From Chrysemys picta bellii (Eukaryota): DNA of 64,000 nucleotides. The translations under genes and the position numbers were made by a program. Every line of letters starts with the position of its first letter. Positions within the stretch are counted from its first letter, which is position 1. The notes below the pieces were generated by a model. The model had not been told where the DNA came from, did not search any database, and worked only from the letters and a program-made list of their open reading frames with translations. Shown here one piece after another: positions 20,013 through 64,000 of the stretch. The stretch lies in the NCBI RefSeq assembly GCF_011386835.1, contig NC_088802.1, forward strand, positions 2,232,001 to 2,296,000, written 5' to 3'.

Positions 20013-20018
20013 TTTATT
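20013..20018 (-). terminator. Candidate polyadenylation signal of the one-domain gene A
   Basis: AATAAA on minus, ~670 nt downstream of the 20686 stop. Confidence 0.5.
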
Positions 20019-20685
20019 TGAGGGCCCCTGACTGACACCCAGGTAGCCTGGCAAATGCTAAAATCAAAAGGAAGTTTACATGGGGTTAAGATCTGTTGCA
20101 GCAGAAGTAGGGGCTCATTTGGGGTATGTCCAATGTCCACCCAGGGAAGCGATTACAGCTACCAGACTCCATCCCGAAGGGAGTGAAGATAGAGGCGAAG
20201 ACCGAGGTCGCTGGAGAGGGCGACAGAGATGAATAGACTGGTGTAAATCAGGATTAACCCTGTTTTCAGTGGAAACAAGGTCAGGATCAAGTCCTGAAAA
20301 GGCACCAGTTGTGGTTAGACAGGACTGAATCCTGACCTAGAACCCCAGCATGAATCCAGACCGAGTCCACCATCGTCAAAGGAGGCAATCCTTAAGTCAC
20401 ATCAACTTTTGAGTCTGTCTGGTTGACCTCTCACTGAGAGAAGGTCAAACTCTACCAACACCAGCAAACCTCAGAGCAGAATCCGGGTCATTGCCTGTAA
20501 CCCCCAAGACCCATTAGAATTATACCCAATATCTCTCACCCATGAACGTCTTCCACAATGGAAGAACAATGGTTTCTACTTTCTGGGGGAAGGGGAATCT
20601 GGGACAGTTTGCTTGTGAGTCTCTTCCACAATTAAACCATTCTGTTAATTGTACTTGGCTTGTTGAAGATCTAACCCCCCAGTAG

Positions 20686-21090
20686 CTAATACATCTTCTT
20701 CACCATCTCCAAGAGCGGTCCAGCCGGGATGTAGTTGACCATCTCCGCCACAGTCTTCACGATGTTCCTGCTGAAGACTCTGGCCACAGCAGTGTCCCAT
20801 CGGGGCATTTTGATGTTGTACTGGACTTGCCCTTCCACATGGAAGATGGATATTTCATTCTCCTGCGTGCCGGACACGAAGACCAGCACCGTGGTCTCGC
20901 TTTGGATGGTCATCCTGGCGTTCTGCTGGACACAAAGCGGCTCCTGGGAGAACTCACTCAGCGCTAGATTGAAACAGGCCTTGAGCTCCTCGGTCAGCCG
21001 CTTCCGGGACTCCAGACGCGTCCGGACCTGGAGAAGCCGCTCGATGCTCAGGGGTTCTGGGAGGGTGGATTTAACCACACACCCACCCAT
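20686..21090 (-). CDS. Uncharacterised 134-aa protein with one copy of the 98-aa domain (gene A)
   Basis: ORF MGGC..PEPLS..CF..A..F..EPLCVQQNARM..FVSG..ENEISI..G.VQY aligns with the repeats of 36065-38455; acceptor aatttccttcctttgtag| at 21142/21141; in-frame TGA two codons before cccATGG. Confidence 0.75.
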   Translation of the reverse strand: MGGCVVKSTLPEPLSIERLLQVRTRLESRKRLTEELKACFNLALSEFSQEPLCVQQNARMTIQSETTVLVFVSGTQENEISIFHVEGQVQYNIKMPRWDTAVARVFSRNIVKTVAEMVNYIPAGPLLEMVKKMY

Positions 21091-21981
21091 GGGTCATCCC
21101 CTGACCTTCACTGGGACTTGATCGCAGGAGACTAATACAATCTACAAAGGAAGGAAATTGGGGTTAGTTCCCTGGAGACCTGGGTTCACACCCATCCCCC
21201 CCTCACAAGTGAGATGAGTTTTCATTTGGTCTCAGCCTAGTTCGGTTAGTAGACCTAGTTGAAATAAACTGGAAACTGAGTAGACGGTCTTGTGACATGG
21301 ATGCTGCTGAGTTCAACACAATTTCTGGTCTCTACTTAGTCAGTGGAAGCCCCAGGGATAGAACCCAGGAGTCCTGGCTCCCAGCCCTCCCACTCAGAGT
21401 AGTCTATCTAAACATCCCATTTTACATACGGAGAAATGGAGGCACGGGCCGGGGGGGTGGGGAAGATACCTGACAAAGGTGGCTGGTGTTTTAAGATCTC
21501 CCAAGGGAATGCACCATTGTGTGGTCTTTAAGTCACCACCCTTGAGACTTCCAAGTGGGTCAGGAACGGGTGTCAGAACCTGGTGACTAGGGGTGGGCCC
21601 GAAATGGTTTTCCAATCCCAGAAACATTTGAGATGTCAAGAAAAATTCACTATTCTGCACTGGGATTGAGGTGAGCCCTTTCCGAGTCCTCTGTGTAAAA
21701 CCAGAGAGAGGCACCTGGTACGGACCCACCCCCTTATTTTGACCAAAAACTCCATCATGGACCCAAGTAATCGTCCCAACGAAGCAGTCTTTGACCCTTC
21801 CCCCTTCTGGCAGAAAGTTTCAGTTTCCACTAACTTTTGGGGGTCAAAATTCCCAGCCCGTCCTGCTCAATGCCCTTGCCCTCCCCATACTGCTGGGGCA
21901 GGGGGGTTAAAGTCCTGCTCCAGCTACATGGAAGAAAGCTACTGGCTTCCCCCCAGGTAGAGTTTCTCCAAGGTCGCTAAG

Positions 21982-22215
21982 GGTTACGTCTACACTGCAG
22001 TGCCAGCCCGCTGCACCGAATTGGAGTGCCCGGGTCAATTCGCTTGGGCTCAGAGCGACACAAGTGTAGACAGGCTCGGGCTAGAGACACGTCCACACCG
22101 CAGGGTTTGAGCCCAAGTCTAGCCCGAGCCTGACAACATCTACACTGCAATCTTATAGCCCCCAGCCAGCTGACCCAGGCCAGCCAGGGGGGTCTCATTG
22201 CCGTGTAGACGTACC
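21982..22215. mobile_element. PIF/Harbinger-type MITE
   Basis: TIRs GGTTACGTCTACAC / GTGTAGACGTACC; duplicate copy at 59630-59876. Confidence 0.75.
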
Positions 22216-22855: not shown

Positions 22856-23296
22856 CAGGTCAGGGGACTCTCCTGTAGCTTCCAGCCAAAAGAAAGACCA
22901 GACAACACATACCCCTCCAGCCACACACCTACACACAGCAATATAGTAGAACTAGTCACACTTGTGTCCTTTTTATAAGCAAGTGGCTCCCAAGGCAGGC
23001 TGGGAGTTGGGAGCTAGGAATGCTGGGAATTGTAGTTTCTTCATCAGTTTGCAAAAGGCTCCATTTCTGATTGGCCAGGGAACGAAAGGGATCCGGGCCC
23101 TACCATCTATCTAATACATTGGTCTTTTCTGCTCTTCCCTATCCAGGATATTAGCTCCGCTGTGATTGGCCCAGCCCACCCAGACAGCTGGGTCTCAAGG
23201 TTCTCCTGGCCACACCCTTCTCCTCTCTGATTGGTCAGTTCTTTAGAGCTTGGGGTGCCTGATTGGTCCCAAGGGGGGGTGTCCCAGCTATTTAAA
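22856..23296. promoter_or_regulatory. Divergent promoter of cassette A (minus-strand exon 1 plus galectin promoter)
   Basis: Minus TATAAAA at 22977-22971 and minus donor CTG|GTAAGG at 22856/22855; SBS GAATGCTGGGAATTGTAGT 23018-23036; ATTGG at 23070, 23118, 23165, 23230, 23262; plus TATTTAAA 23289-23296. Confidence 0.7.
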
Positions 23297-23369
23297 GCTC
23301 ATGGTTGGGTTAAGCCCCTATGGTGGTTGGTGCTGTGTGTGGTGTTGTGTTGTCTCTGGAGTAGCTGCA

Positions 23370-25775
23370 ATGGAGTGTGTGAGTTGTGGGAGTAGAGGGG
23401 TATTAAGGTTGGTTCTTTGGGGGGTGGGATGGGAGCTGTGGGAAGAGGTTGGTAGATATATAGGGCAGGAGGTCTGGTGGTAGGGGGTTGCTGGGTACTG
23501 GGGATATCTTTAATTCCTCTCCCTGGGCTGGGGGGGGGGCTGGTTGACCCCTAGTCCTGCCTCCTATCTGTATGGGGGAGTTGAGTCTGTCTCCTGGTAG
23601 CCAAGCCCCACCTGGTGACGGGGAAGCTGTGAGATCCCTGAGGTTGGGAGAGGGTGATTCCCTCTTCTAGGCCTGAGAGGGTCATGTTGAGGTGGGGGCA
23701 GGTGTAGTGGGCTGGAGGGGTCACAGCTTTGTTACCTGCAACCCTATGTGAAATTCATCTTCCTTGTTTGCTCCCCACCTGGTGCCCCCTAGAGGGGACA
23801 GGCCCCATTCCCTGAGCCAGCCAGTCCCTGCCCTGGGGCTGGATGGGTACTGGTGCCCCCTAGAGGGGACAGGCCCTTGCCCTATTCCCCCACCCCCTTG
23901 AGCCAGCCAGTCCCATGCCCTAGGGCTGGGTTGGGGCCTGTGCCCCATTCCCTGCCCCCTGTGGGGAGGGGTGCTGGGGGGTGCTCACCTCTCCCCCTTT
24001 CCCCAACCCCCAGGGGATGGTTCTGACCCACTTGAAGGTCCAGCCTGGTGAGTGCATTGCTGTGAAGGGGATGGTGCCACTGGATGCCAAGAGGTGAGTG
24101 TGGGCTGACGGGCATGGGGAGGGAAGGGTTAACCTGATCCTGGGGGGGGAATGCTGGGGTCCCCCTGCCCCCCAACAGCACAGTGGGGGACTCTCTGGGA
24201 CCCCAGGATGGGGCTCAGCCCCCCACAGGGGGCAGCATCTCCCTGCAGACCCCTCACCCCCTGGGTCTGCATCATCTCAGCCCCCCTGAATCCTCCAGGG
24301 CCCCCCTGCCTCAGCCCTGACCCCTTTCAGGGGGAGCTGTGGGGATGGGGTGTGTGCCAGTGGATTCCCCCATGGGATGGGGGGCTGGTCTCCTCAGGAC
24401 TGACCCCTGGGGTGTCCATGGCCCCAGCACCTTCTCTGTGGGGCTGGCTCTCAGTCCCCTGCATGGGATGAGCTCAGTGGGACAGAGCCCCACAGACTGT
24501 GGGGCCTGGGCTGCAGGGGGACTGGGGCTGGCGTTGGTCCCCTGATGCTCCTCTCCACCCCAGGAAGGGGCTGGAGGGTGGCAGAGAGGATGCTGGGAAA
24601 GCTGTGCCATAGGCTGGTGCATTGTGGGAAGCTCCCAGGTGATGCCCAGCAGGTGACCCTGCTGCTGAGGATGGTGGGAAACTGTCCCACAAGGCAGCAG
24701 GGCTGTGGCTTTAGCCCAGGGGATTCTGGGAGACCTGCCTGTGACCCAGAGCCTGTGGGGGTGACAGCAGGGGATGCTGGAGAATTCCCATGATGCAACG
24801 CATGTCACTGCAGGGGGCTCCATGATGCAGCACTGTCCCAGAGGATGCTGGGAAGCTTCCCACAATGCACCAGTGCAATAAATTGAGCAGAGGGAATTCT
24901 GGGAGATTCTCCCATGGTGCAGGGGGTGATGGGGAATTTCCCATGATCCCCTGTGTGGCAGAGGGGTGGCTGGAGGCTTCCCACAATGCAAAGTGAGTGG
25001 CTGTCCCTGTTTGGGGGTGGGTGGGGGGCTGGGGAAGCTGCCTGGCCCAGGTGGGGGGTCCCAGCCTGTCTCTCTCCCCTCCAGCTTTGCCCTGAACATG
25101 GGCCGGGCCGGCTCGGACCTGGCCCTTCACTTCAACCCCCGGTTCGAGAGCCATGGGGACGCTCGCATAATCATCTGCAACTCGCTGCAGGGCGGGGAGT
25201 GGGGGGAGGAGCAGCGGGAGCCGGACTTCCCCTTCCAGCCGGGGCAGGATACCAAGGTGAGGGGGGGACTGTCCAGGGGAAGATCACAGCTCCCATTCAT
25301 GATGTGAGATGGGTGGGGGGCAGGGCATTGTGGGGTGGGGGGAGAAGGCTACCCTCAAAGAGAGGGATCTACCATCTGTGGGGCACTGTCTGGGGAAGAC
25401 TGCAGCTCCCATTTGCTGGGGTCAACTGAATGGGGGGGAGGGGAGGCAGGGCACTGTGTGGGGAAGATCACAGCCACCCCATCTCAAGCAGATGAGTCTA
25501 TTGCAAGTGGGGGATGTCTCAGTCCTTGTTGGGATCAGGGGAGGGGGGTGTAAGGTTGGGATGATATTTAACCCTGTAGGGGGCAGGTGTCTCTGGCTCC
25601 ACCCCTCACCCTCTGGCTCCTCCCCCAGATCTGCATCTCCTTCGATGCCCAGGAGCTGACGGTGGCGCTGCCGGGGGAGCAGCAGCTGAAATTCCCCAAC
25701 AGGCTGGGGCTGGAGGCCATCGAATTCTTCTCAGTGGAGGGAGACTTCAGGGTCAAGTCCATCAAGTTCAAGTAG
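23370..25775 (+). CDS. Galectin-1-like prototype galectin, copy A, 135 aa
   Basis: Exons 23370-23378 (MEC), 24014-24093, 25085-25256, 25629-25775 = 9/80/172/147 nt, the LGALS1-type structure; sugar-binding residues H44 N46 R48 H52 N61 W68 E71 R73 all present; AATAAA 25828-25833. Confidence 0.95.
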
Positions 25776-26836: not shown

Positions 26837-27380
26837 TGTTAGCCAAATGGGCTCGTTTCCCCCTGGAGCTGCCCAATTACCCCAAGGAGGCACGGGAGTC
26901 TAGAAGACGGCTTTAAGTTTTTATTGACCAGTCAGCTGAGTGGGTGCTCTCCTTGGCTAATGCCAGAGAGAGAGAGCCCCTTACAAGTACAGAGCAGCCT
27001 TTTTATACCTAGCAACAAACAACTTAGCATGCATACCTTATACGTATATGCGGAAGGAACATTTCAAAGGGCCTTGTATGCAGATTGAGAGAGGGGCAAG
27101 GGAATGGATACATAACAGGATGCGGTTTAACATTTTACTTGAACTTATCACCTCTTTCCTTAGCACCCCCCTCCTCTCCCCCCTGCACTCCACTCTGAGG
27201 CATATGTTAGACTAAAATAGCAGTGCCTGTCTGTCTCACCTAGGCTGGTGGTTTGGCCACCTTGTCTTATCGCATAATCTTGCTGCACAGAGGGCTGCAG
27301 CGGGTGTTTTGCAGAGACAGCCGTTGCTCCTGATATAACAGCTGGGCTTATAAGAAAATAGTTGACCTGTTGCTCTAACA
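26837..27380 (-). repeat. ERV1 3' LTR
   Basis: Direct repeat of 33425-33968; no mismatch seen by eye. Confidence 0.95.
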
Positions 27381-27413
27381 GGATTCTCCCCCCTTAAAAG
27401 CATTTTGAGAGCT

Positions 27414-29059
27414 TTATGGCCCCCAATCTTCAGCCTTCACTGGCTGGTACAGTGCTATCATTTGCTGGTATGCAATTTGATTAGTCATTCGTCTGATCAG
27501 TGCCACTATACAGGGAGCAAAGCAAGCTAGGATTAATAGGGTTACAATAAAGAGTACAAAGAGGAGGAAGCCTTTTCGAAGCCATCCCAGTTGCGGTAAC
27601 CAGGAAGTAACCCAGTCCATATTCCACCCTCCCCAGGTTTGGACGGGGACATGGGTTAACTTTCTCATTTCCTTTGTTAGCTGCTTTACCGCTTTTCCAT
27701 TATCGTCAATTTGTAAGCAGCAATTAGACTCATTTAATTTTGCACAAACCCCTCCTTCCTCCGCCAGTAAATAGTCAAGGACTATATGGTGCTGATAGAT
27801 TGCACTCCTCATTTGGGTTGATTGATCGGCCTAGAGATCGAGAGCTGCGGCTGTTTGGTTAGTTAAGATTTCCAAGACAGCCTGTAACCTAATTATTCGA
27901 TTTAGGTTATAAATAGGTTCTCTGGCCCCGGATAGTAACTCATTGGGATTCCAAGTGGCCGGTCCATAATGTTGTATAATCCTTTCGGGTGGCCACTCCT
28001 GAGCTCCCCACTTTTGGGAGCTTCCGGCAGTCAGGGTGGAATCCACAAACCACCTTTCTCTAATTAAATCATCATATACCTTAATTCCCAATTTATTTCC
28101 TGCATCTGGGGTAATAGAAAGAACAAGGGTCTTATATATCCAACATAACATATCCCAGACCAATTTGGAGGCAATCTTCGGTAGGCATAGGACCCGCAGA
28201 TCCAATAATGGCCCTTTAGAGCCCAGGTTCCATTAGCAAAGGGGCCATCCCAGGTTTCCTCGTTCTCGTCGTCCTTTAGATGGTCAAAATATAAAGGATT
28301 ACCTGGCCCTAAAGGTCCCCCCACCATCCCATCAGCTGAGTTGCAATAATTACATCTCCACGCCCCAGCTCCTGCTTTCCAGACACAATCGCAGCCCCAT
28401 TTTGGCTGTTTGGTGTTAGACCAGAATTGTTTAAAACCCCATACTCGAGTTCCATTCTGATTCTGCCATGCCCATTGAAACCACCGTACCACGTGGTCCT
28501 TACTAGTGGTATTGTCTAGCTGGCAACTCGGGAATAGGGCATCGAAGAACCCATCCCGTCCTACCACCCTGCAACCTTCGGTTGTAGGGTAGTATTGTTT
28601 GGAGCATTTCACCCAAGTATTATTGGTGAGCCTCACATGGGTCTGGTTCCATCGCCCCTGATATCTAGAACAGTCACACGGGCGACAATAAGGGTCCCAG
28701 CAGTCAAACCCTGGGGATAGAGTCCAATCACACTTGCTTTCTCCCAAGTACACTCCCTCCCGCCTTGTTCGATTAAGGCAGAGAATACCCATTCCAGAAG
28801 AATAAAGTCGCCAGGGGCTACTATCCTCAGTCCAAACTCCCGTTCCATCGTGGACTATACTCAAATTGCTGAGCCACCATTTGGGCTGTACCGGCTGGGC
28901 TACCCAAGGCCATTCATTTAATTCCCCGGGGCCTCCACACACCCAACAGTTACTGAGGTTAAAGGATTTTGCTATTGTCTCCCCCAGCTGTAAAAACCTA
29001 TTTTCCCAACCATAATAGTGGTGGAAGTACATAAACAAAGATATTAACAATAATTTCAT
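27414..29059 (-). pseudogene. env: ERV1 env (ERV3/HERV-I-like), one frameshift and one nonsense codon
   Basis: CWVCGG; WPPERIIQHYGPATW; immunosuppressive domain YQHHIVLDYLLAEEGGVC followed by a CX7CC motif; TM GFLLFVLFIVTLLILACF; frameshift near 28100; TAG at 27833-27831. Confidence 0.9.
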
Positions 29060-32034
29060 TATCTTTTTCTAAACAGTTCCTTTAGTCCGTCCAGTTGCTG
29101 ATACTCACAGGTGGAGTCTTCACCTGTGCCACCCCGGGCGTCCGGAGCCGGGGCGGGCAGAGGGCCGGTGTCCTCTTCCACTGGTTCAATCTCCGGGTTA
29201 GGGTTCAGAAACCGCTTTACCCGTGTATGGTGTGCCCATTTGTCACTCCCAAGAACTTTAACTGCAGCTTGGCTGATGAGCGAGACAGTGTGTGGGCCAT
29301 CCCACCGTGGTGTAAGGGGGTCACGCTGCCACTTCTGGAAAGGGTATGTGGCCCATGGCAGGCCTCCCATTGGGGTGGAAGGGCCACACCCCTTTTGGTT
29401 GGTTCGTTGACAAACAGGGCAATTACTAACAATTCTCTGGGCTTCCATGTGCATGCCCAGCCCCTTAAGGGATTGGGTGGCCAGATCAACCATTGCCCCT
29501 GACCCCATATGTCCCTCCTTATGTATGTGCCGAAGAATTTTCTGAAGCACTGTTTGGGGGACAAAAATCTCCCCCCCTGGTAATTTCCACCATCCAGAGG
29601 GAACCTGCCGGGCCCCCGCAGCCTGCGCGTGGCACACTTCCTCAGTTGTGTATTGAGGAGGGGAGTTTTGAACTTCTGTATCTTGAATCAAGAGGAGCCA
29701 TGAGGCCCCTTCCCGTGCGGCCTCCTTTGCGGCCTGATCAGCCAATTGATTATATCTACGTTGTTCGGCCTCCGGGGCCCTTCCATGGGCCTGCACATGT
29801 ATTACGGCGACCCGGAGGGGAAGCATTAGGGCCTCAAGAAATGTTTTGATGAGACTCCCATGTGCGATTCTTTGACCTGACGCTGTGATAAATCCCCTTT
29901 CTCTCCACAGGGTCCCGTGAGCATGTACCACCATGTAGGCATAGCGACTATCAGTATACAGGTTAATAGTTTTCCCGGTCCCCAACCGGAGAGCCTCAAT
30001 AAGAGCCACTAGTTCCGCTGCTTGGGCGGACAAATTAGGACTAAGTTTAAACTTGTATACTTCTTTGTCCTTAATTACTACTGCTGCTCCGGTATACCTT
30101 TTTCCATCTATCACATAACTGGACCCGTCAACGTATCCCTCAATTTCAGGATTGGGCCAAGGCAAGTCTGAGAGGTCAGGGCGGGGCTTGGTTTCCTGTT
30201 GTAAAACCTCAATACAGTCATGAGTGGGACCAGTCTCATGGGAGACTCGAGGATCGGGCAATAGGGTAGCTGGGTTGAGGGAGCTAACTGTCCTAAAGGT
30301 TAAGTTAGGGGCTAGTAAGAGCCCTACTTCATATCTGGTATGTCGGCTGGGATTTAGATGCTTTTCCCCAGCACCTGTCCCCAGTATTTGAGGCACCCCG
30401 GGGGGAACCAGAACCTCAGTGTTCCCCCCCAGGGTCAACTTTTCAGCCTCCTGTACAAGAAGAGCGGTGGCTGCCACGGCCCGTAAGCAGGCGGGCCACC
30501 CCTTGGCAACAGGGTCCAACACCTTTGAGTAATATCCAATGGGTCGCCAGGTTGGTCCCGACCTTTGACATAGAACTCCAGAAGCTACCCCTCCCCTTTC
30601 ATGAACGTATAGGGTAAATGGTCTCCAGGGGTCTGGCAGGGCTAGAGCGGGAGGCTGAACCAAGGCCTCTTTTAGCTCTCTAAATGCTTTTTCCATCTCT
30701 CTGGTCCATGTCCAATGGAGCAGACCTTCTTTAGTTAAATATTCATACAGTGGTTTGGCTCTTCCCCCGTAGTCAGGGATCCAGAGCCGACAAAAGCCAG
30801 TCAATCCCAGGAAGGCCCTTAATTCTCGGGGGTTCCGGGGTTGGGGACAATTAAGTATCACCTGGATTCTTTCTTTACCCAGACTACGACTTCCCTGACA
30901 CAAATAATACCCAAGGAAAGTGACCTGCTGCTTAACCAGTTGTGCTTTTTCCTTTGAGACCTTATATCCCTGTGCCCCAAGGTAATTAAGGAGTTCTATA
31001 GTTTGCTCTTGACAGGCTGCCTCTGTTTCAGAACTTAAGAGCAAATCATCACAACATTGGACTATGTTACATGAAGGGGGTTTAGCCAGGAATGGGGCGA
31101 GGTCCCTTCTTAACTGGCAACCAAAAATCTCAGGTGTAGAGGTAAGTCCTTGTGGGACAATGGTCCAAACGTATTGAGCTTTGTAGTGAGTATCTGGGTC
31201 CTCCCACTCAAAGGCAAACAGTCTCTGAGACTCCAGATCAAGGGGGATGGAAAAGAAGGCATCTTTTAAATCTATAACAGAGAACCAACTGTGATTTTTG
31301 GGAACTTGGCCCAGAATAGTATGGGGATTCGGGACAACTGGATAGGGGGCCTCTATTAACTTGTTAATCTGTCTTAGATCCTGGACCAACCGATACTGGC
31401 CATTAGGCTTAGGCACTCCCAGTATCGGAGTATTGTATGGGGACGTACCCTCCCTGAGCCATGTATACTGCAGAAACTTTTGAATCAGAGGTTTTAACCC
31501 GATTCTAGTGGTCAACTTAAGAGGGTATTGTCGAATTCGGACCGGCCTGCTTCCTTCCTTGAGGGAAATATGCACTGGGGAAGCATTCCGGGCCCGAGCG
31601 ACGCCTCCCTCCTCCGCCCAAACCTCAGGGTTAACTCCTGCCAATTGGCTCCCTCCATTCCTTCCCGGAAATTCCGGGGACTGATTTCTAGCGCTTGTCA
31701 GGGCCATCTGGTAATTGGAGGAGTGCTGTTTAGGAAGTCTAACTTCCATAGTCCCATTGTCGAATGAGATTTCTGCCTGCACTTTAGTAAGGATATCTCG
31801 ACCGAGGAGCGCGATGGGACAAGAGGGACTGCAAACAAACTGGTGGGAGATTTGACAGTCCCCTATTTTCACTAGAAGAGGCAAAGTTTTTTTTTTTTCC
31901 AAAGATGTAGTTTGTCCCTCTATGCCTTGGACCATGGCACGTCCCCGGGCTCTACCTCGGGGAGCCTTATTCATGGGGAGCAAACTAAGGGTGGCCCCAG
32001 TATCAATAAGGGCTTCAATTGGGCGGCCCTCCAC
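29059..32034 (-). pseudogene. pol: ERV1 pro-pol, open frame but RT motif altered and integrase core deleted
   Basis: Protease LIDTGA; RT with QCCDD in place of YxDD; RNase H YVDGSS/AELVAL/YTDSRY; integrase HHCC joined directly to C-terminal PRWDGPHTV. Confidence 0.92.
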
Positions 32035-32039
32035 TTTAA

Positions 32040-32150
32040 ATTTAACCGTGAGATCCAGACTGGCAACTTGCGCCGCCAGGAGGGGCCGCTGGGTCCCCCG
32101 GCCCCCCTTTCCTCACATCCTTCTCTCAGGGCCATGGCTAAAACACGGGC

Positions 32151-32181
<31 letters not shown>

Positions 32182-33423: not shown

Positions 33424-33424
33424 T

Positions 33425-36060: not shown

Positions 36061-36064
36061 ATAT

Positions 36065-51600: not shown

Positions 51601-52576
51601 GCAGCCAGATGTTAAAAGCAACATGACACAAGATCCTGTGTTCCTGGATGGGCTAACACACTCTCAGTAATCAACGGATACAATCCCACCAAGGGGGGGG
51701 GGGTTACTCTCTAAAGCCTGTGGGGGTGAAGGAGCCGAAGGGGACACCGATTCTGGCATTACAACAGTGGGAGGGTTCTGGGGTTTAGCAGCCGTTACTA
51801 CCGAGCCTGTCGGAGTCAAATGGCACTTGAACAAAATATCAGATCATTTTTACATAATACCATTCCATAATCAGCCTGGCGTCTAAACGCCTTCCAATTA
51901 TTTAACATACATTCCAAGGGTGTCCCAGCATATGTGCTTTGTCCGGACCCCATTATGCTCGTGTTTAATTAAACCTGGTCACGGGTTCAACCGACCCCCC
52001 TTGCGATCAAGATATCCTGGTCACGGGGTTTCCCCTCGCAGGAGTCTCGGTGCGGCTAGAGTCGGTTTAAGTCCTAGACCTGGTTATCACAATTTTGGCT
52101 TCCAGCATATCATTAGTATGAAAAAGAACAATACCCCTGCCAAGAATAAAAGCAAGCCCTGGGGCTTTTCTACGTCCCAGTAATTGTCCAATACGGTCCA
52201 CAGACTAGGGAAGTTAGTGAAATTATTTATTAACCGTTGCCTGGCTTAGTTATCATGACCACAAAACATTTGTCCATTTACAGTACCTTTCCACACAGGG
52301 ATTACCCAAAGGGTCCAATTCTACACTGCGGGGGCGTTATCCCTCAAACCCAAGAGGTAAACGCACTTACCGCCCGGAGTGGCCGCGTCCGGCTGTTGGA
52401 CCTTCCCCTTCTTCTGGTACCGTCTTATCGCCGTGTCGTTAGGAGTTCTCTTTAGAGAGGACACAGCCGCCCCGACCGATTGTGACGACCCGAGGCCCGA
52501 GCAAACCAACAGCTCGAGGTGGCCACTCCTCGGAATCGCCCTCGGTCGTCGGTCAGTGCCCTCCACAGGGAGAGAA

Positions 52577-52594
52577 GTCCCGGCGGAGTCGCCA
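52577..52594 (-). other. ERV2 primer-binding site, tRNA-Arg(UCU)
   Basis: Plus-strand GTCCCGGCGGAGTCGCCA equals the recalled 3' 18 nt of vertebrate tRNA-Arg-TCT. Confidence 0.85.
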
Positions 52595-54959
52595 ATTTGT
52601 TGGCCAAATAGGGCCCGTTTCCCCCCGGAGCTTACCTAATTACACCAAGGAGGCACAGAGAGACAAGAAGACGGGTACCAGGTCCTTTATTTGTCAGTCA
52701 GCTGAGAGGGTGCTCCTCGGCTCATGCCAGAAGAGACACACCTTACATGGGCAACATAGGCCCTTTTTATAACCAGTAACAAACAATTCAGTTCTCATCC
52801 TTTTTACGTCATTATGCTGACCGATAGATAATAGGTTACACAGAATACATATATTATTTTGGGGACGGGGGATACAAGAGACATCTGTTGCGGATACATT
52901 TATCATGTTGAAGGGAGAACAAGGTACATCCCTTGACCCTTTGCACTAAATACCTTGGGGATATATGGGAAAGCGGCTGCAAACTAACTATTTCTCTCTG
53001 TTCCCTCTTCCTTATCTCTATTATTTCTGCTAATATGAGTGAAACTACAGCCATCTGCCAGAAACGCTGACCAATACATTTCTGCTTTAACATGTAAGCA
53101 GTTAGCATAGAAGTAGGTGAGAGTTCCCAAGATGGAGTCACTGTGGTTCACAGATAGGCCCAGAGCAAAAGAGTTTCATCGACACTTTGGCTTTCCACTC
53201 TCCCGAGTTACCTGGTAGCTATGCCTAGTGGATCCCAACAACAGCGAGTCTGTTTTTATTATTATTTTACAGCAAATAAGGTGCCAGGTACTGTAGGTAA
53301 TTATCAGGGGGCCCCCAGGTGTCTGATCTCCTCCCACAGCAGGTGATTGTATAGGACATGGGCTGGTTGGGCCGACCCTCTCTGCACTGCTGGTCTGGCC
53401 GTCCTGGCTGTGAATGGGAAGCCGGACGGGGAGTCCTTTGTTCCTGTGTAGGCGAGTGGAATATCCTGCTTCAGTGTTGAGTCCGGCTTTGCTGAATATT
53501 CGTAGACACGCTGGGTTAAATTCTGATGACATTTATACTAGCGTAAAACTAGAGTAACTCCAGAGTCCAACGTTTTGCATCCATATGGTGGACCAGATTC
53601 CCCACTGTGTGACTCTGGTTTCACACCGGTAGAACCCCTCTGATTTACACCGGACTCTAACTGGTGTAAACCTGGAGTAACACAGTAGCGAGTCAGGCCT
53701 GTGTTTGGGTCTGTGTCTGATCGCTGATACATGAAGGATCCTAGTGACAACTGCAGCTAACGTTCCCCCATGAGCCTCTACACCCACCCCCTCCCAGGAC
53801 CCCTGCCTCTCCCACCCCGCTCCTTACCCCTGCCAGCGAGTCTTGGGTCCCTCCCACTTCCCAGCCCTCAGCACCAAGAGACAACGCCGTGGGTTCAGAA
53901 GGGCCCGGCCTGCAGAGCAGGACCCAGGTGCCGGCCGTGCTCTCAGCCATGTGATGTGTGTAGTAGTGACAAGATCACTGCGCAGCCAGACGTGTGCACA
54001 GCTTACAGGGAACCCTGCTCCGGGCACCTAGCGGGGCTCAGCCGGAGTGCGAGGTGCGGGTGCCTTTCCCAGGCACGTCCCCCACAGCCATGTTCAGTCT
54101 GACAACCACCCTGGCAGAAATCTGTGGGGGCGGGGGGGCACATGACCCTGCATGCCACCCCTCCCCAGGGCTCCCGCTGTCAGCCCTGGGTGGCTGCCCC
54201 CCCCCCCCCCCCCCCCCCGTCAGCCTCACGGGGCTGAAACAAAAAAATCCGACATTTAAGAGTTCTATCGCGAGATCATGAGTGAGGCTTAATTTCCCTC
54301 AGAAATCATGTCTCTCGTGAAAACTTCCTGAGAGTTGGCATGGCTGCTAAGGGCCGTCAGGCCCCAGTGAACCAAGTCGCCATGGAAACCAGGCTGGGCA
54401 GTGAACAGGCCTAAAGGCCAACAGGCTGCAGTGAATCCAGTCGCCATGGAAACCAGGCCAGTCTGTGATTTAATTTTTTAATTTGTCACAGGCCACCAGG
54501 TGCTGAGCTGTCGGTGACAATACAGGACCCGCCCGGGGACCAGTCGCTACCTCCCCCGTCAGGAGCCGTGATGCTGTTGGACCAGGGCTGGTTGGGCCGA
54601 CTCCATGGGGCAGCTGGTTTACTAGTCCTGGCCAGGAATGGGAGGTGTCCAAGGCAGCCCTTTGCTCCTGCCGCAGCGAGGGCCCAGCCAGCTTCGGGGC
54701 CACGGCTTTGTGCATCGCTCAGGGTAGTCCCAATCTCCACATGCACCGTGAGGAACAAAGATCCCGTTTGCGTTCTGTATTGTTATTATCGATAGCCCAG
54801 GGAACCCACAGTCCCCCCACAAACCAGATCCCGTGGCACTCAGTGCTGTACGAACATATGTTAACAGACAGTCCCTGCCCCGACGAGCCTACATCTAAGA
54901 CACCATGTCACATGCGGGTGCAACAAAGAAAAGGGGCTGGTGGAGGGTGAGGGGACAGG

Positions 54960-55250: not shown

Positions 55251-55254
55251 TGTA

Positions 55255-56039: not shown

Positions 56040-56500
56040 GGTGCAGGCCCAGCTGACTTGTTAGCCCAGGAAAGGGACAAAGGATGGAGCAGGGGCAAAT
56101 GGATGGGCAGCTGGAAACTGGGGATTCTCCTGTAGGGAGTTGTGGGGAGACCACATGTTTTGGGGGCAAGACTCCCACAGTGTCTCTGAGGGCAGCTTCC
56201 ACCTTTCTCTCATCTCTGGGGAACTGTGTGGCACTGCCTGGGGAAGATTGCAGCTCCCCTTTGCTGGGGTCAACTGAGCAGGGGGGAGGGGGCAGGGCAC
56301 TGTGTGGGGAAGATCACAGCTACCCCCTCTCTGGCAGATAAATCTGTATCTTTCTAGGATGGTATCTCCAGTCCTAAGTCAGATGGGGGAGAGGGGTGGA
56401 GGGAAACCTCAGGGTCAAGTCCATAGAGTTCAAGTAGTTCCTCCCTTTCCCTGATGTCTTCTCCCCCTCCATGGGGAGCTAAAACCTACCAGTAAACATG
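56040..56500 (+). pseudogene. Galectin copy B relic (intron 3-like sequence plus last 9 codons and 3'UTR)
   Basis: AGGGTCAAGTCCATAGAGTTCAAGTAG (RVKSIEFK*) at 56411-56437; poly(A) signal changed to AGTAAA at 56491; flanks match copies A and C. Confidence 0.85.
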
Positions 56501-57217
56501 AATCTCCTCATCACCCTGCGCTGTCCCTGGACTAGTTATTCACCCCAGTGCATCCTGGGAGCTGGGATTGGGGACCTGGCCCCCATCTCAACTGGCCCAG
56601 AGGAACTGGCTGGGTGGAGGCTGGGCAGGCAGGGAGCGCTAGACCAGGGTGTGTGGTGGTGGGGATTCTCCTTTAGGTACACGGATCCTTCCAGAATTCA
56701 TACAGTGGATGGGGGAAATCTAGGGGTGTAATACTGAGTTAAATGCACTAAGGACTCATGATGGACGGATTGTAAATGGTTTTTATTATGGAACAAGCCC
56801 TCCGAAAATCTTTTAAATAAAGGCGGAATAATTCACAGGGTTTTACAAAAGCACAGAGGGAATATTCCACATCCACCACCCATGCACAATACCCCAACGC
56901 TTTCATTGTATCTATCCCAACACCCCATTCCCCAGGCTAACAACCACACGTGTACAGGCATGGGGCTCAAATTATTAACAATTGGCATCCCTGACGCAGG
57001 TCCCCCAGGTGTTACTGTTTTCTATGGCTACTCTGCCTCCCAGCTGTTAAGCTTGTCCCTTTGCTCTCACAGCTAGTGGGTGGAACACAACATACAGCTA
57101 TGATATTCTGAACTTTTCCTGCTGCTTCCAGCCTGTCCCTTAAACAGTGTCATCTTCCCATCAGATGGTCCAATGCACACTTGTTCACCATCCAGCAGTT
57201 ACCAGGGTGATAGTTAA

Positions 57218-58811
57218 ATGTTTCTTCTTAGCAACAAGAAGAAAGTCAAGGAAAGTGTGGGCCCCTTACTGAATGAGGGAGGCAACCTAGTGACAGAGGA
57301 TGTGGAAAAAGCTAATGTACTCAATGCTTTTTTTGCCTCTGTCTTCACAAACAAGGTCAGCTCCCAGACTGCTGGACTGGGCAGCACAGTATGGGGAGGA
57401 GGTGACCAGCCCTCTGTGGAGAAAGAAGTGATTCGGGACTATTTAGAAAACCTGGACGAGCACAAGTCCATGGGGCCAGATGCGCTGCATCCGAGGGTGC
57501 TAAAGGAGTTGGCGAATGTGATTGCAGAGCCATTGGCCATTATCTTTGAAAACTCATGGCGATCGGGGGAGGTCCTGGATGACTGGAAAAAGGCTAATGT
57601 AGTGCCTATCTTTAGAAAAGGGAAGGAGGAGGATCCGGGGAACTACAGGCCAGTCAGCCTCACCTCAGTCCCTGGAAAAATCATGGAGCAGGTCCTCAAG
57701 GAATCAATTATGAAACGTTTAGAGGAGAGGAAAGTGATCAGGAACAGTCAGCATGGATTCACCAATGGGAAGTCGTGCCTGACTAACCTAATTGCCTTCT
57801 ATGAGGAGATAACTGGCTCTGTGGATGAGGGGAAAGCAGTGGATATGTTATTCCTTGACTTTGGCAAAGCTTTTGATACGGTCTCCCACAGTATTCTTGC
57901 CGGCAAGTTAAAGAAGTATGGGCTGGATGAATGGACTGTAAGGTGGATAGAAAGCTGGCTAGATCGTCGGGCTCAACGGGTAGTGATCAATGGCTCCATG
58001 TCTAGTTGGCAGCTGGTTTCAAGCGGAGTGCCCCAAGGGTCAGTCCTGGGGCTGGTTTTGTTTAATATCTTCATTAATGATCTGGAGGATGGTGTGGACT
58101 GCACTCTCAGCAAGTTTGCAGATGACACTAAACTAGGAGGCGAGGTAGATACACTAGAAGGTAGGGATCGGATAGAGAGGGACCTAGACAAATTAGAGGA
58201 TTGGGCCAAAAGAAACCTGATGAGGTTCAACAAGAACAAGTGCAGAGTTCTGCACTTAGGACGGAAGAATCCCATGCACTGCTACAGACTAGGGACCGAA
58301 TGGCTAGGTAGCAGTTCTGCAGAAAAGGACCTAGGGGTCACAGTGGACGAGAAGCTGGATATGAGTCAACAGTGTGCTCTTGTTGCCAAGAAGGCTAACG
58401 GCATTTTGGGCTGTATAAGTAGGGGCATTGCCAGCAGATCGAGGAACGTGATCGTTCCCCTCTATTTGACATTGGTGAGACCTCATCTGGAGTACTGTGT
58501 CCAGTTTTGGGCCCCACACTACAAGAAGGATGTGGAAATATTGGAAAGAGTCCAGCGGAGGGCAACAAAAATGATTAGGGGGCTGGAGCACATGACTTAT
58601 GAGGAGAGGCTGAGGGAACTGGGATTGTTTTGTCTGCAGAAGAGAAGAGTGAGGGAGGATTTGATAGCTGCTTTCAACTACCTGAAGGGGGGTTCCAAAG
58701 AGGATGGAGCTCGGCTGTTCTCAGTGGTGGCAGATGACAGAACAAGGAGCAATGGTCTCAAGTTGCAGTGGGGGAGGTCCAGGTTAGATATTAGGAAACA
58801 CTGTTTCACTA
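57218..58811 (+). mobile_element. CR1 LINE ORF2 (RT) segment, truncated at both ends
   Basis: 546-aa open frame with [39 protein letters not shown]; ends at TTTCACTA before the 3'UTR. Confidence 0.95.
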
Positions 58812-59629
58812 TTTCACCATCACAAAGTGAGATGAGTTTTCATGTGGTCTCAGCCTAGTTGTTAGTAGACCTAGTTGAAATAAACTGACCAGTTTCCCTC
58901 CCCCTCCTTGTGACATGTATGGTGCTGAGTTGAACATCATTTCTGGTCTCCACTTAGAGGAGTCTAGTGGGTTAGAGTGGGGGGGGGGGAGGAGGAGGAG
59001 CCAGGATTCCTGGGTTCTCACCCCAGCTCAGGGAGGGGAGGGGCGGGGCAGGGCAGCTGGGAGCTAGGACTCTTAGGTTCTATCCCTGGGCCTTCCACTG
59101 ACTGTATAAATGTCCCATTTTGCAGATGGAGAAATGAAGGCACAGGGGGGGGGGCGGGGAGAGAAGATACTTGACAAAGGTGGCTGCTGTTTTAAGATCT
59201 CCCAAGGGAATGCACCATTGTGTGGCCTTTAAGTCACCACCCTTGAGACTGCCGTATTGGCGAACCGGGAAGTGGGTCAGGAATGGGCATCAGAACCTGG
59301 TGACTAGGGATGGGCCCAAAATGGTTTTCCTATCACAGAAACATTTCAGATTTCAAGAAAACTTCGCTATTCTACACCGGGATTGAGGTGATCCCTTTCC
59401 AAGTCCTCTGTGTAAAACCAGAGAGAGGCTCCTGGGACGGACCCTGCCCCCTTCTGGCTGAAAGTTTCAGTTTCCACTAACTTTTGGGGGTCAAAATTCC
59501 CAGCCCATTCTGCTCGATGCCCCTGCCTTTCCCATACTGCTGGGGCAGGGGGGTTTAAGTCCTGGTCCAGCTACATGGAAGAAAACTACTGGCTCCTCCC
59601 CTAGGTAGAGTTTCTCCAAGGTCACTAAG

Positions 59630-59876
59630 GGTTACGTCTACACTGCAGTGCCAACCCGCTGCACCAAATTAGAGTGCCCAGGTCGATTCGCTTGGGCTCG
59701 GAGCTACAAGTGTGTAGACATTAGGGCTCGGGCTAGAGCCAGGCCCACCCTGCAGGGTTTGAGCCCAGGTCTAGCCCAAGCCTGAACATCTACACTGCAA
59801 TCTTATAGCCCCCAGCCCACACCCCAGTCAGCTGATCCAGTCCAGCCAGGGGGCCTCATTGCCGTGTAGACGTACC
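59630..59876. mobile_element. PIF/Harbinger-type MITE (duplicate of 21982-22215)
   Basis: TIRs GGTTACGTCTACAC / GTGTAGACGTACC. Confidence 0.75.
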
Positions 59877-60482
59877 TGTGTTCAGATACTGCCCCTCCAC
59901 TCCAGGCTGTTCATGCTCAGCCAGAACCCCAGAACTTTCCCAATGATTCCCACACACTCTTGTTTGCTACTTGCACAAAACCGGGGGTCAGATCATCCCC
60001 CACACCCTAGGGATCAGTCCCCCTTTAACCATCTGATTTACTCAGATTAACAGCAACTCAGGGCATGGACTGTCTCTGCACAGCATGGCAGGTCCTGAAA
60101 GCTCAGATGGGAATAGAACCCAGGAGTCCTGACCCCCCACATGTGCTCTCCTCTAACCCACTAGCCCCCATTCCCTTCCCAGAGCTGGGGAGAGAACCCA
60201 GGAGCCCTAGCTCCCAGCTCCCCCTGCTCTAACCCACCCAACCCCACTCCCCTCCCAGAGCCAGGGAGAGAACCCAGGCATCCTAGCCTTAAGCCCTACT
60301 GTAATACACCTGTCTGCAGCAATCCCTCAGTTAAAGTACCCCCCAGACATGGGTATTAAAGACACTCATCAAGACACATTGGAAAGTTAAAGCATTCTTA
60401 GGAAAAAGTACTAAAAGTGATAAAAGTTAAATAACAAGAACAAGCCTATAAGAACCCCACCCCTCAAATCCTAACCCCTTAC

Positions 60483-60937
60483 CAGGTCAGGGGACTCTCC
60501 TGTATCTTCCAGCCAAAAGAAAGACCAGACAGCACATACCCCTTCAGCCACACAACTGCATACAACTGCACACAGCAATATAGTGAAACCAGCCCCATTT
60601 GTGTCCTTTTTATAAGCAAGTAGCTCCCAAGGCAGGCTGGGAGTTGGGAGCTAGGAATGCTGGGAATTGTAGTTTCTTCATCAGTTTGCAAAAGGCTCCA
60701 TTTCTGATTGGCCAGGGAATGAAAGGGGTCCGGGCCCTAGACACCATCTGTCTAATACATTGGTCTTTTCTGCTCTTCCCTAGCTGGGAATATGAGCTCC
60801 ACTGTGATTGGCCCAGCCCACCCAGACAGCTGGAGCTCAAGGTTCCCCTGGCCACACCCCTCTCCTCTCTGATTGGTCAGTTCTTTAGGGCTTGGGATGC
60901 CTGATTGGTCCCAAGGGGGGTGTCCCAGCTATTTAAA
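60483..60937. promoter_or_regulatory. Divergent promoter of cassette C
   Basis: Minus donor at 60483/60482; minus TATAAAA 60614-60608; SBS 60655-60673; five ATTGG; plus TATTTAAA 60930-60937. Confidence 0.7.
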
Positions 60938-61000
60938 GCTCATGGTTGGGCTAAGCCCCTATGGTGGTTGGAACTGGGTGTTGTGTCTGGAGTAGTTATA

Positions 61001-61151
61001 ATGGAGTGTGTGAGTTGTGGAAGCAGAGGGGTGTTAAGGCTGGTTCTCTGGGGGTAAGATGAGAGCTGTGGGAAAAGATTGGTTGATATGTGGGGCTGGA
61101 GGCCTGATGGCAGGGGGTTGCTGGGTACTGGGGGTATCTTTAATTCCTCTC

Positions 61152-61191
<40 letters not shown>

Positions 61192-63445
61192 GGGGGGGGT
61201 GGGTGGGTTGACCCCTAGTCCTGCCCCCTGTCTGTATTGGGGAGTTGAGTCTGTCTCCTGGTAGCCAAGCCCCACCTGGTGACTGGGAAGCTGTGAGTTC
61301 CCTGAGGTTGGGGGAGGGTGATGTTGTGGGGGGGCAGGTGTAGTGGGCTGGAGGGGTCACAGCTTTGTCACCTGCAACCTTGTGTGAAATTCATCTTCCT
61401 TGTCTGCTCCCCATCTAGTGCCCCCTAGAGGGGACAGGCCCTATTCCTGGTCCCCCTGAGCCAGCCAGTCCCTGCTCTAGGGCTGGATTGGGGTCTCTGC
61501 CCCCTGTGGGAAGGGGTGGTGGGAGTGACTGGGGGTGCTCACCTTTCCCCCACCCCCAGGGGATGGTTCTGACCCACTTGAAGGTCCAGCCCGGCGAGTG
61601 CATCGCCGTGAAGGGGATGGTGCTGCCGGATGCCAAGAGGTGAGTCTGGGCTGATGGGTGTGAGGAGGGAAGGGTTAACTTGATCCCTGGGGGGCAATGC
61701 TGGGGTTCCCCTGCCCCCCAACAGCACAGTGGGGGAGTCTCTGGGACCTATACATCTCCCTGAAGGCATCTCAGTCCTGGATCTGCATCCTCAGACCCCC
61801 CTGAATCCTCCAGGGTCCCCTGCCTCTGCCCTGACCCCCTTCAGGGGGAGCTGTGGGGATGGGGTGTGTACCAGTGGACTCCCCCATGGGATGGGGGATG
61901 GTCTCCCCAGGACTGACCCCTGAGGTGTCTATGGCCCCAGCCCCTTCTGTGGGGCTGGCTCTCAACCCCTGCATGGGGTGAGCTCAGTGGGACAGAGCCC
62001 CACAGACTGGGGGGCCTGGGCTGCAGGGGGACTGGGGCTGCGTTGGGCCCGTTGATGCTCCTCTCCACCCTGGGAAGGGGCCGGAGGGCGGCAGAGGCGA
62101 TGCTGGGAAAGCTGTGCCATAGGCTGGTGCAATGTGGGAAGCTCCCAGGTGATGCCCAGCAGGTGACCCTGCTGCTGAGGATGGTGGGAAACTTTCCCAC
62201 AAGGCAGCAGGGCTGTGGCTTTCTCCCAGGGGATTCTGGGAGACTAGCCTGTGACCCAGAGCCTGTGGGGGTGACAGCAGGGGATGCTGGAGAATTCCCA
62301 TGATGCAACACATGTCACTGCAGGGGGCTCCATGATGCAGCACTGTCCCAGAGGATGCTGGGAAGCTTCCACCAGTGCAACAAATCGAGCAGAGGGAATT
62401 CTGGGAGATTTTCCCATGGTGCAGGGCAGCAGGGGATGATGAGGAATTTCCCATGATGCTCTGCATGGCACAGGGGTGGCTGGAGGCTTCCCACAATGCA
62501 AAGCAAGTAGCTGTCCCTGTTTGTGGGGGGGCCCTGGGGTGGGATCCCCGCTGGCCCCTGGGGAAGCTGCCTGGCCCAGGCAGCGGGTCCCAGCCTGTCT
62601 CTCTCCCCTCCAGTTTTGCCCTGAACATGGGCCGGGCTGGCTCAGACCTGGCCCTTCACTTCAACCCCCGGTTCGAGAGCCACGGGGACGCCCGCATCAT
62701 CATCTGCAACTCGCTGCAGGGTGGGGAGTGGGGGGAGGAGCAGCAGGAGCTGGACTTCCCCTTCCAGCCGGGGCAGGACACCAAGGTGAGGGGGGCACTG
62801 CCTGGCGGGAGATCCCAGCTCTCCCTCTGTGGGGTGGACTGATTGTGTGTGTGTGTGTGTGTGTGTATGAATCTTGAGCTCCTTGGTAGCAAACACAGCC
62901 CTCTTCTCTCCTAGCTAGGGTGGGGTGATGGGTACTGTTTGGGGGAAGATCACAGCTCCTGTTCATGATGTGAGATGGGCGGGGGGCAGGGCATTGTGGG
63001 GTGAGGGTAGATCCCTCTCTTTGAGGGCAGCCTTCTTCCATCTCTGGGGGACTGTGGGGGAAAATCACAGCTCCCGTTTGCTGGGGTCAGCTGAACGAGG
63101 GGGAGGAGGCAGGGCACTGTGTGGGGAAGACTGCAGCCACCCCATCTTGAGCAGATGAGTCTATTGCTAGTGGGGATGTCTCCAGTCCTGCTTGGGATGT
63201 GAGGGGGGGGGTGGGGGGTGTAAGGTTGGGATGATATTTAACCCTGTAGGGAGCAGGTGTCTCTGGCTCCACCCCTCACCCTCTGGCTCCTCCCCCAGGT
63301 CTGCATCTCCTTCAATGCCCAGGAGCTGACGGTGGCGCTGCCGGGGGAGCAGCAGCTGAAATTCCCCAACCGGCTGGGGCTGGAGGCTGTTGAATTCTTC
63401 TCAGTGGAGGGAGACTTCAGGGTCAAGTCCATCAAGTTCAAGTAG
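61001..63445 (+). CDS. Galectin-1-like prototype galectin, copy C, 135 aa, R73Q
   Basis: Exons 61001-61009, 61560-61639, 62614-62785, 63299-63445; intact frame and splice sites; WGEEQQEL instead of WGEEQREP; AATAAA 63520-63525. Confidence 0.93.
61155..61188. repeat. (GT)n microsatellite
   Basis: About 17 GT units in galectin C intron 1. Confidence 0.95.
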
Positions 63446-64000
63446 CTCCACCCCTTTCCTGCTGGCTCCTCCCCTTCCCTGATGGCTCCGCCCCCTCCAT
63501 GGGGAGTTAAAAACCTACCAATAAACATGAATCTGCTCGTCACCTTGCGCTGTCCCTGGGCTCGTTATTCACCCCAGTGCAGCCTGGCTGGGTGGAGGCC
63601 AGGCAGGCAGGGGGCGCTAGACCTGTGTTTGTGGGGGGGATTCTCCTTTGGGGACAAGGATCCCTCTGGGACTTGTATAGAGGATGGAGGAATCTAGGGG
63701 TGCAATACTGGAACATGGTCTAGTGGCTGGGAGCCAGGACTCCTGGGTTCCCTCCCTGGCTCTGGGAGGGGAGTGGGGTCTGGGGATTATGGGATGGGGG
63801 GGGCTGGGAGCCAGGACTCCTGGGTTCTCTCCTTGCCATGGTAAGGGAAAATGGAGAGAGAGGAAAGGGGGTTGCACCCTTTTCACCTTCTCCTCTCCCA
63901 CTTTGAATTTTTTTATCTTTACCTTCTCACTGTCTAGTAGCCCCTTGAGGAACAAGGTCCCATTTTTCCCCCCCACCCTGGGGCCTGATTAGAGCCAGGC

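Follow-up and report, generated by a model that had tools for sequence, protein, structure and literature searches.

A conserved divergent galectin gene pair and a massively expanded 98-residue domain family in the MHC-linked region of the turtle Chrysemys picta bellii

In a stretch of 64,000 nucleotides from the turtle Chrysemys picta bellii (NC_088802.1, positions 2,232,001 to 2,296,000, or C12:2232001-2296000 in our contig numbering; hereafter the window), a galectin gene lies head-to-head with a gene encoding a single domain of about 98 residues, and sequences related to both recur further along, raising the question of whether the two genes form an obligate unit within the major histocompatibility complex (MHC). 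The initial annotation proposed that they do, as an immune lectin/partner module that was triplicated as a unit into copies A, B and C. Our analysis indicates that the divergent pair in copy A, which we call gene A and galectin A, is spliced, transcribed and conserved in turtles, with likely co-regulation from a compact shared promoter, and that its domain belongs to a far larger family dispersed mostly away from galectins. We assign this reading a probability of about 0.72; the figure covers how the genes are built and spliced, the conservation of promoter and gene order, the selection on gene A and the family size together with co-regulation of the pair, and stops short of a functional link between the two products.

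Gene A is a spliced, transcribed two-exon gene on the minus strand. Its non-coding exon 1 (22856..22940, 5' end approximate) is followed by an intron of 1,714 bp with GT..AG ends (21142-22855), the joint 21141/22856 being present in RNA runs X1 and X2, and by exon 2 (20013..21141), which extends from the splice acceptor at 21141 through the coding sequence and 3' untranslated region to an AATAAA signal at 20013-20018 and is covered by RNA contigs over 20300-21141. The coding sequence (20686-21090, minus strand) specifies 134 residues, with an MGGC N-terminus, one domain at about residues 10-107 and C-terminal helices. On the plus strand, galectin A comprises four exons encoding 135 residues: exon 1 (23326..23378) with the start codon at 23370 and the beginning Met-Glu-Cys, exon 2 (24014..24093), exon 3 (25085..25256) with the core of the sugar-binding domain (PF00337, E 8e-15), and exon 4 (25629..25775) with the stop codon; RNA contigs contain GT..AG joints for all three introns (23378/24014, 24093/25085 and 25256/25629). 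The RNA source consisted of four small contig sets (X1, X2, X3 and X14), which were judged to be RNA because canonical splice joints are present in them. With the canonical sugar-contact residues (His, Asn, Arg, Asn, Trp, Glu, Arg) complete, galectin A is a prototype galectin of the Gal-1 type. The original description of copy A, a one-domain gene on the minus strand facing a canonical galectin on the plus strand, is therefore upheld by spliced RNAs from both genes in head-to-head orientation.

Between the two genes lies a shared bidirectional promoter (22941..23325), as delineated by motif positions and an alignment of five turtle sequences. Each gene has its own TATA box, that of gene A at 22970-22977 on the minus strand (promoter minus-strand sequence TATAAAAA at 22970) and that of the galectin at 23289 on the plus strand (TATTTAAA), with ~320 bp between the two boxes and ~385 bp between the estimated start sites. 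The promoter also contains five ATTGG/CCAAT boxes (23070, 23118, 23165, 23230 and 23262), a CACCC box at 23210 and a ZNF143/SBS-like ACTACAATTCCCAGCA on the minus strand at 23021. A galectin RNA contig carrying sequencing adapter begins at 23331, and RNA contigs carry exon 1 of gene A to at least 22920 on the minus strand. The two genes are hence a divergent pair with start sites less than 1 kb apart, the arrangement by which bidirectional promoters are recognized. Across Chrysemys copies A and C, Lepidochelys, Emydura and Carettochelys, the five aligned sequences share near-invariant blocks, with the core preserved almost base for base. In addition, gene A and galectin A both exceeded a k-mer depth of 1000 in X1 and X3, and both stood at 4 or less in X2 and X14, a concordance across the four runs that suggests co-expression. 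Taken with the shared elements, we consider it likely that this promoter co-regulates gene A and galectin A. A familiar parallel is TAP1-PSMB9, a bidirectional-promoter MHC pair whose two products act in one pathway; the turtle pair resembles it in being head-to-head MHC genes a few hundred bp apart around one short regulatory core, and differs from it in that each turtle gene has its own TATA box, that no interferon-type elements were identified, and that one partner is of undescribed function.

How old is this arrangement? Orthologues of the CSNK2B-linked galectin were found in all major turtle lineages, and the pair itself was sampled in four lineages, Chrysemys and one cryptodire, one pleurodire and one trionychian besides. 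In the latter three species, Lepidochelys kempii, Emydura macquarii and Carettochelys insculpta, CSNK2B and the galectin share a strand, with the galectin ~6.5 kb downstream, and an MGGC one-domain open reading frame (ORF) of 133-136 residues is encoded on the other strand, 1.8-2.4 kb upstream of where the galectin starts, giving the order CSNK2B, MGGC single-domain ORF (minus), galectin (plus). These gene A orthologues carry no gene call though they are intact and conserved (Lepidochelys L034, 7247-7651 and 15286-15690; Emydura L036, 7682-8089; Carettochelys L037, 7806-8234). Gene A is 96% identical to its Lepidochelys counterpart and 88% to that of Emydura, and the ratio of nonsynonymous to synonymous substitution (dN/dS) of 0.17-0.30 shows purifying selection on it. 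The closest protein relatives are all from turtles. The pleurodire-cryptodire split is ~200 million years old, and because the pair is shared across it, the pair was already present in the common ancestor of living turtles. Lepidochelys has at least 3 intact tandem modules, and Chrysemys one intact module, one half module and relics; this variation in copy number between species fits birth-and-death evolution. Caretta P0002 and Mauremys P0004 were considered as gene A orthologues and rejected, being orthologues of a second single-domain MGGC paralogue that is frameshifted in Chrysemys (C12:2471378-2471668, L013) and intact in Mauremys P0004, Caretta P0002 and Chelydra P0003. Beyond turtles, no galectin was present within 10 kb of family members at alligator loci L038, L039 and L044 or Anolis locus L045. 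The proposed check of whether the domain always lies head-to-head with a galectin comes out positive for the A-type orthologue in turtles and negative for the family as a whole.

The clearest second copy of the pair is copy C, which in a self-BLAST of the window matches copy A (21409-26261 vs. 59107-63979) at 82-90% identity over 4.9 kb. Its left part (58820..61000) holds a remnant of the gene A 5' region (58820-58887), a homologue of the intron, a homologue of exon 1 with its donor (~60477-60600) and a complete promoter with motifs at 60607-60930. The coding exon of gene A is absent, and a CR1-type long interspersed nuclear element, with a reverse-transcriptase ORF at 57218..58858 on the plus strand, sits where this exon is lost. 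Galectin C (61001..63445, plus strand; exons 61001-61009, 61560-61639, 62614-62785 and 63299-63445) has intact splice sites and an intact ORF of 135 residues, matches PF00337 on exon 3 (E 7e-14) and differs from galectin A at 7 residues, among them R74Q at 62744-62746 (own numbering; R73 in the human protein), which replaces an Arg invariant in 17 aligned galectins. The initial view of this copy, the same promoter with an R73Q galectin and a deleted partner ORF, was accurate. Because dN/dS between galectins A and C is 0.11 (dN 0.023, dS 0.199), galectin C has remained under purifying selection, and it represents a natural experiment, a galectin that is selected yet lacks the invariant sugar-binding Arg. 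One X3 contig carries C-type letters at 25154 and 25163 and none at the R74Q site, with exon 3 of C being 94.8% identical to that of A vs. a placement threshold of 95%.

We next ask which galectin this is. It shares with the prototype galectin-1 genes (mammalian LGALS1, sauropsid gal-1a/CG-16 and gal-1b/CG-14) a length of 135 residues, a single PF00337 domain, a four-exon layout with a three-codon exon 1, the lack of a signal peptide and, in copy A, a complete set of sugar-binding residues; it differs from them in sharing its promoter with an unrelated gene and, in copy C, in having Gln for the invariant Arg. Sauropsid gal-1a adjoins shroom3/sowahb, and gal-1b adjoins gal-2 (PMC4224342). Orthology to either gene was considered and rejected on synteny, the neighbors being GPANK1 and CSNK2B in Chrysemys and CSNK2B in the three other turtles. 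Because the published gal-1a and gal-1b loci lie elsewhere (PMC4224342), the CSNK2B-linked gene is a third prototype-galectin locus.

The remaining copy in the initial scheme, gene B (36065..38455, minus strand), is a single open frame of eight tandem 98-residue domains with its first ATG at ~38392. An NAR motif recurs every 98 residues exactly, seven times, and there are eight full matches to the hidden Markov model of the domain (E 1e-36 to 1e-46). Given the composition, an open frame of 805 codons would arise with a probability of ~1e-12, and among 500 shuffles no ORF was longer than 240 codons. The start codon that other turtles use is missing from gene B, and dN/dS among its repeats is ~0.6-1.6, unlike that of gene A. 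It is probably transcribed, judging from the sampled-word content of sequencing runs, because the share of its sampled words in RNA-sized runs (24-48%) is close to that in whole-genome DNA runs of the same study (52-56%). With regard to those DNA runs, which carry the same species label, the 52-56% of sampled 31-mers recovered for gene B (region 36000-38600) compares with 92-99% for gene A (region 20500-21400), which suggests that the array gene has much higher allelic or copy-number variation than gene A.

Is gene B then a diverged copy of the pair? The domain of gene A is only 36-45% identical to the gene B repeats, and because of this low identity we regard gene B as an old, separate branch. 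The galectin relic assigned to it (56224..57221, plus strand) retains, besides downstream flank, only an intron 3 fragment (56224-56345) and the final 13 codons of exon 4 (56396-56434). A distance of 18 kb, with a provirus in between, separates this relic from gene B, and no likeness to the promoter of copy A was found upstream of gene B. In addition, gene B and its upstream flank (38796..43557) were duplicated at 91-93% identity as gene E and its flank (C12:2304660-2313974), just beyond the window, where gene E has 13 domains and the duplicated 5 kb flank comes without a galectin relic. Thus, of what was claimed for copy B, the eight-domain gene stands, the relic shrinks to a stump and flank, and descent from module A is not supported. 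The three matching flanks downstream of the galectins were recovered by self-BLAST (25734-26067 and 34255-34745 vs. 56396-57221; 25264-26261 vs. 62930-63979), so that, apart from the caveat on this relic, the sequence observations of the initial annotation were confirmed. Another copy outside the window, copy D, has an array gene with a 673-residue frame (C12:2378309-2380249) and a galectin exon-4 stump 4.8 kb upstream; given this stump, array genes and galectin copies may have been associated from an early stage. At C12:2384292-2385214 (L040/L042), copy D also has a galectin exon 4 that looks intact and, ~400 bp upstream of it, a plus-strand fragment of the 98-residue domain; a rearrangement may have brought the two gene types together here.

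The extent of the family bears directly on the opening question. A profile search of the genome yielded 130 scored domain matches, all within C12 2.25-3.24 Mb and distributed over ~27 loci; the count is a lower bound, i.e., at least 130 domain copies in Chrysemys. The open frames of the family include 516, 522, 673, 805, 1283, 1355, 1746 and 1947 residues. On the same contig, galectins are limited to two genes and two exon-4 relics, and only four of the ~27 domain loci adjoin a galectin or relic. Because domain loci outnumber galectins and stumps to this degree, an obligate two-gene module is not supported for the family, whose members are usually unlinked to galectins, an outcome that the initial annotation had named as refuting; for the A-type orthologue, the linkage is retained. 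An exhaustive profile search of proteins gave 75 representatives at E<=1e-3, and the 30 that were looked up came from non-avian reptiles, one hemichordate and two bacteria or were unnamed, none bearing a functional name. The named homologues that we accept are from turtles, crocodilians, lizards, geckos, snakes and the hemichordate Ptychodera, all uncharacterised or hypothetical; no bird, mammal or amphibian member occurred among the proteins examined. The two bacterial Ig-like repeat proteins (P0062 and P0064) were rejected as spurious, as they are highly repetitive and match only positions 55-90 with E above 1e-7. A word-indexed search with a 77-sequence profile returned only five known small turtle proteins.

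Does the domain resemble anything described? Neither gene A nor gene B had a Pfam match above the gathering threshold, and none of the 77 family domains had a meaningful one; the matches of gene B (Glyco_hydro_65C and others) were summed repeat noise without an aligned stretch, and the PP1_inhibitor match of Pelodiscus P0012 likewise had no aligned stretch. An AlphaFold2 model from the 77-sequence alignment reached a predicted local distance difference test (pLDDT) score of ~97 over the domain. In it, helices span 16-28, 34-47 and 52-55, four strands follow and a long helix comes last, so that the predicted fold is a four-stranded beta-meander against which two to three helices pack. Against the PDB, this model had no significant fold match (best Foldseek E 0.43; best VIA Z 4.3 vs. 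48,161 chains), and a profile search of PDB sequences gave only E values above 0.1; there was no significant structure match among Swiss-Prot models, a shape search of the ESM Atlas gave template modelling (TM) scores all <0.4, and a feature-based protein atlas gave no usable match. Clusters of the AlphaFold DB matched only uncharacterised proteins, from reptiles and more weakly from scallop, oyster, coral and Stentor. REDD1/DDIT4 and OTU folds share with the domain a two-layer helix/beta-sheet arrangement and a similar size, but they differ in scores (Z 4.3, Foldseek E above 0.1) and in that the turtle domain lacks a conserved His/Cys catalytic pair; both were rejected as relatives owing to the insignificant scores, and an OTU-type cysteine protease was rejected since the 77-sequence alignment has no conserved His and the fold matches are weak. 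In the open literature, no description was found for the turtle MHC with the galectin/CSNK2B locus, the pair, the domain family or six LOC identifiers of the family. The 98-residue domain family is undescribed and has expanded massively in the turtle MHC-linked region, and the earlier suspicion of an undescribed system is, as regards the domain, borne out by the Pfam, PDB and literature negatives.

Dozens of paralogues confined to an MHC-linked region, with copy turnover between species, are also a feature of the chicken BG and TRIM/B30.2 clusters. The turtle family differs from these in its building block, a new domain without Ig, B30.2 or coiled-coil features, and in including single exons of up to 20 tandem domains. 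The likenesses to chicken BG and to TAP1-PSMB9 are analogies, not memberships. As a separate observation, family members adjoin RING-B-box-PRY/SPRY (TRIM) genes in Mauremys (L033, 14501-20450) and Anolis (L045, 15027-20969).

We postulate that the window contains the proximal end of a large, undescribed reptile family built from the ~98-residue domain. The oldest recognisable unit would be the divergent pair of gene A, with its invariant Met-Gly-Gly-Cys start, and galectin just downstream of CSNK2B, sharing a compact promoter. This pair would multiply by segmental duplication and decay copy by copy, with C losing the partner exon and B and D keeping only exon-4 stumps of the galectin. Gene B would belong to a second, faster-evolving branch of single-exon arrays with 7-20 domains, spread over ~1 Mb of the MHC-linked region. 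As to where the domain acts, Gly2 and Cys4 are invariant in 8 turtle single-domain sequences, position 6 is Ser, Gly or Cys in paralogues P0003, P0005, P0011 and P0043, giving them canonical N-myristoylation starts, several other paralogues have N- or C-terminal hydrophobic segments, and the giant turtle arrays have neither a signal peptide nor an N-terminal hydrophobic segment. Because of this combination, we favor a membrane-tethered domain that works on the cytosolic side, anchored there by an acylated N-terminus or, in paralogues, by hydrophobic segments, a placement to which we give no better than even odds. Galectins are made in the cytosol. Because the two genes share a promoter, were duplicated jointly in Lepidochelys and have long been retained together, a common pathway for the gene A product and the cytosolic galectin is plausible, if tentative, e.g., one in which the gene A product serves in membrane recruitment or unconventional export of the galectin.

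Several alternatives have to be weighed against this scheme. An obligate immune module triplicated as a unit, with A, B and C as its diverging copies, would accommodate the clear paralogy of A and C over 4.9 kb, the occurrence in both B and D of a galectin exon-4 stump (plus strand) upstream of a domain gene (minus strand), and the retention of the A-type pair in all four turtle lineages. However, it has to contend with ~27 family loci for two galectins and two stumps, a B stump 18 kb away with no promoter sequence in common with A, a duplicate of B plus its upstream flank, gene E, that has no stump, and a domain identity of 36-45% that marks B as an old branch rather than a recent derivative of A; its immune role is only a prediction. 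We consider this triplication unlikely, and what survives of the original proposal is a conserved, co-transcribed pair evolving by birth and death. A stronger contender, which we place slightly short of an even chance, is that shared promoter elements alone hold the pair together, the products being unrelated and the spread of the family a by-product of segmental duplication. Bidirectional promoters commonly link unrelated genes, the second paralogue (A2) and most family members have no galectin, and copy C retains a selected galectin without its partner; against these stand the retention of the arrangement over the deepest turtle split with purifying selection on both ORFs, and the joint duplication of both genes at least 3 times in Lepidochelys.

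Two further alternatives concern the domain genes themselves. The MGGC start of gene A would have no bearing if the arrays were surface molecules of a receptor or mucin type that face the lumen or the cell exterior; several lizard, crocodilian and softshell-turtle members do have a hydrophobic segment before the domains, some also after, and there are weak profile matches to bacterial Ig-like repeats over the beta half. This we find improbable, given that gene A and the giant turtle arrays have no N-terminal hydrophobic segment, that four paralogues have canonical N-myristoylation starts, that the domain alignment has a single near-invariant Cys, that positive charges after the N-terminal anchor of Anolis P0018 would put its domains in the cytosol, and that the bacterial matches are limited to positions 55-90 with E above 1e-7. 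The absence of a Pfam match and the lack of annotation of the small gene A ORF in three turtle assemblies might instead indicate chance or repeat-derived ORFs or pseudogenes, as might the missing start codon and the repeat dN/dS of gene B. For gene A this is largely refuted by an abundant, spliced mRNA and by a dN/dS of 0.17-0.30 over the deepest turtle split, and with the improbable length of the gene B frame, the confidently predicted fold and RefSeq models in several reptiles, we regard it as a very slim chance overall.

Certain findings also weigh against the scheme that we prefer, namely a co-regulated pair within a family of membrane-tethered cytosolic proteins: 1) co-expression is drawn from only four contig sets of two studies, chosen because gene A is in them, and levels are poorly gauged by contig depth; 2) the evidence from placed RNA contigs covers gene A and galectin A only; 3) the second single-domain paralogue has no galectin within 10 kb in Caretta and Mauremys, so that the domain does not need the lectin; 4) in Chrysemys, as in the other orthologues linked to a galectin, Val or Ile occupies position 6, a poor fit to the PROSITE myristoylation pattern; 5) some paralogues have hydrophobic segments flanking the domains on both sides, which could place the domains in the lumen; 6) in a complex prediction of the Lepidochelys galectin P0106 with gene A, gene A was left unfolded (pLDDT 34-36), a result neither for nor against binding.

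The MHC class III region is usually treated as a conserved gene set. In turtles, the interval after CSNK2B contains a third locus for prototype galectins, a partner gene that is deeply conserved yet missed by annotation pipelines, and a domain family of at least 130 copies described in no database, a further case of lineage-specific MHC expansion beside the chicken BG and TRIM clusters. The confidently predicted fold without a solved counterpart is a target for structure determination, and the compact, conserved bidirectional promoter is directly testable. A bolder and rather doubtful proposal is that the domain defines a new class of MHC-encoded, membrane-tethered cytosolic reptile proteins working with a dedicated MHC-linked galectin, with the giant, fast-diverging and apparently polymorphic arrays as multivalent variants shaped by pathogen pressure. 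If so, the domain proteins might mark or repair damaged membranes that expose glycans, or control galectin export.

With respect to its surroundings, the pair has as upstream neighbors in the window a V-set immunoglobulin exon, GPANK1 (G-patch and ankyrin) and CSNK2B, and the contig also carries MHC class I exons, at C12 0.8-1.2 and 2.0-2.1 Mb. Because of these neighbors and the class I genes on the contig, the region is MHC class III, as had been proposed. Two proviruses interrupt the interval. The first (26837..33969, minus strand), in the downstream flank of copy A, is a young endogenous retrovirus with 545-bp long terminal repeats (LTRs) that are 100% identical, a 4-bp target duplication (GTCG), pol domains, a 991-residue protease-reverse transcriptase-RNaseH-integrase ORF and env-like ORFs. 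It splits the A flank, and since the equivalent flank of copy C, which runs uninterrupted in locus E, lacks it, its insertion is very recent. The second (46721..53241, minus strand), between gene B and the relic, has 644-bp LTRs at 99.8% identity, a target duplication (ACAG) and an integrase domain, with its pol ORFs broken in pieces. The V-set exon upstream of GPANK1 is at 1562-2059 (Pfam E 7.5e-10), and GC-rich, G-skewed tandem repeat blocks (GC 0.68, skew +0.30) occupy 8336-9165 and 15340-16174, between GPANK1 and CSNK2B and within the CSNK2B region.

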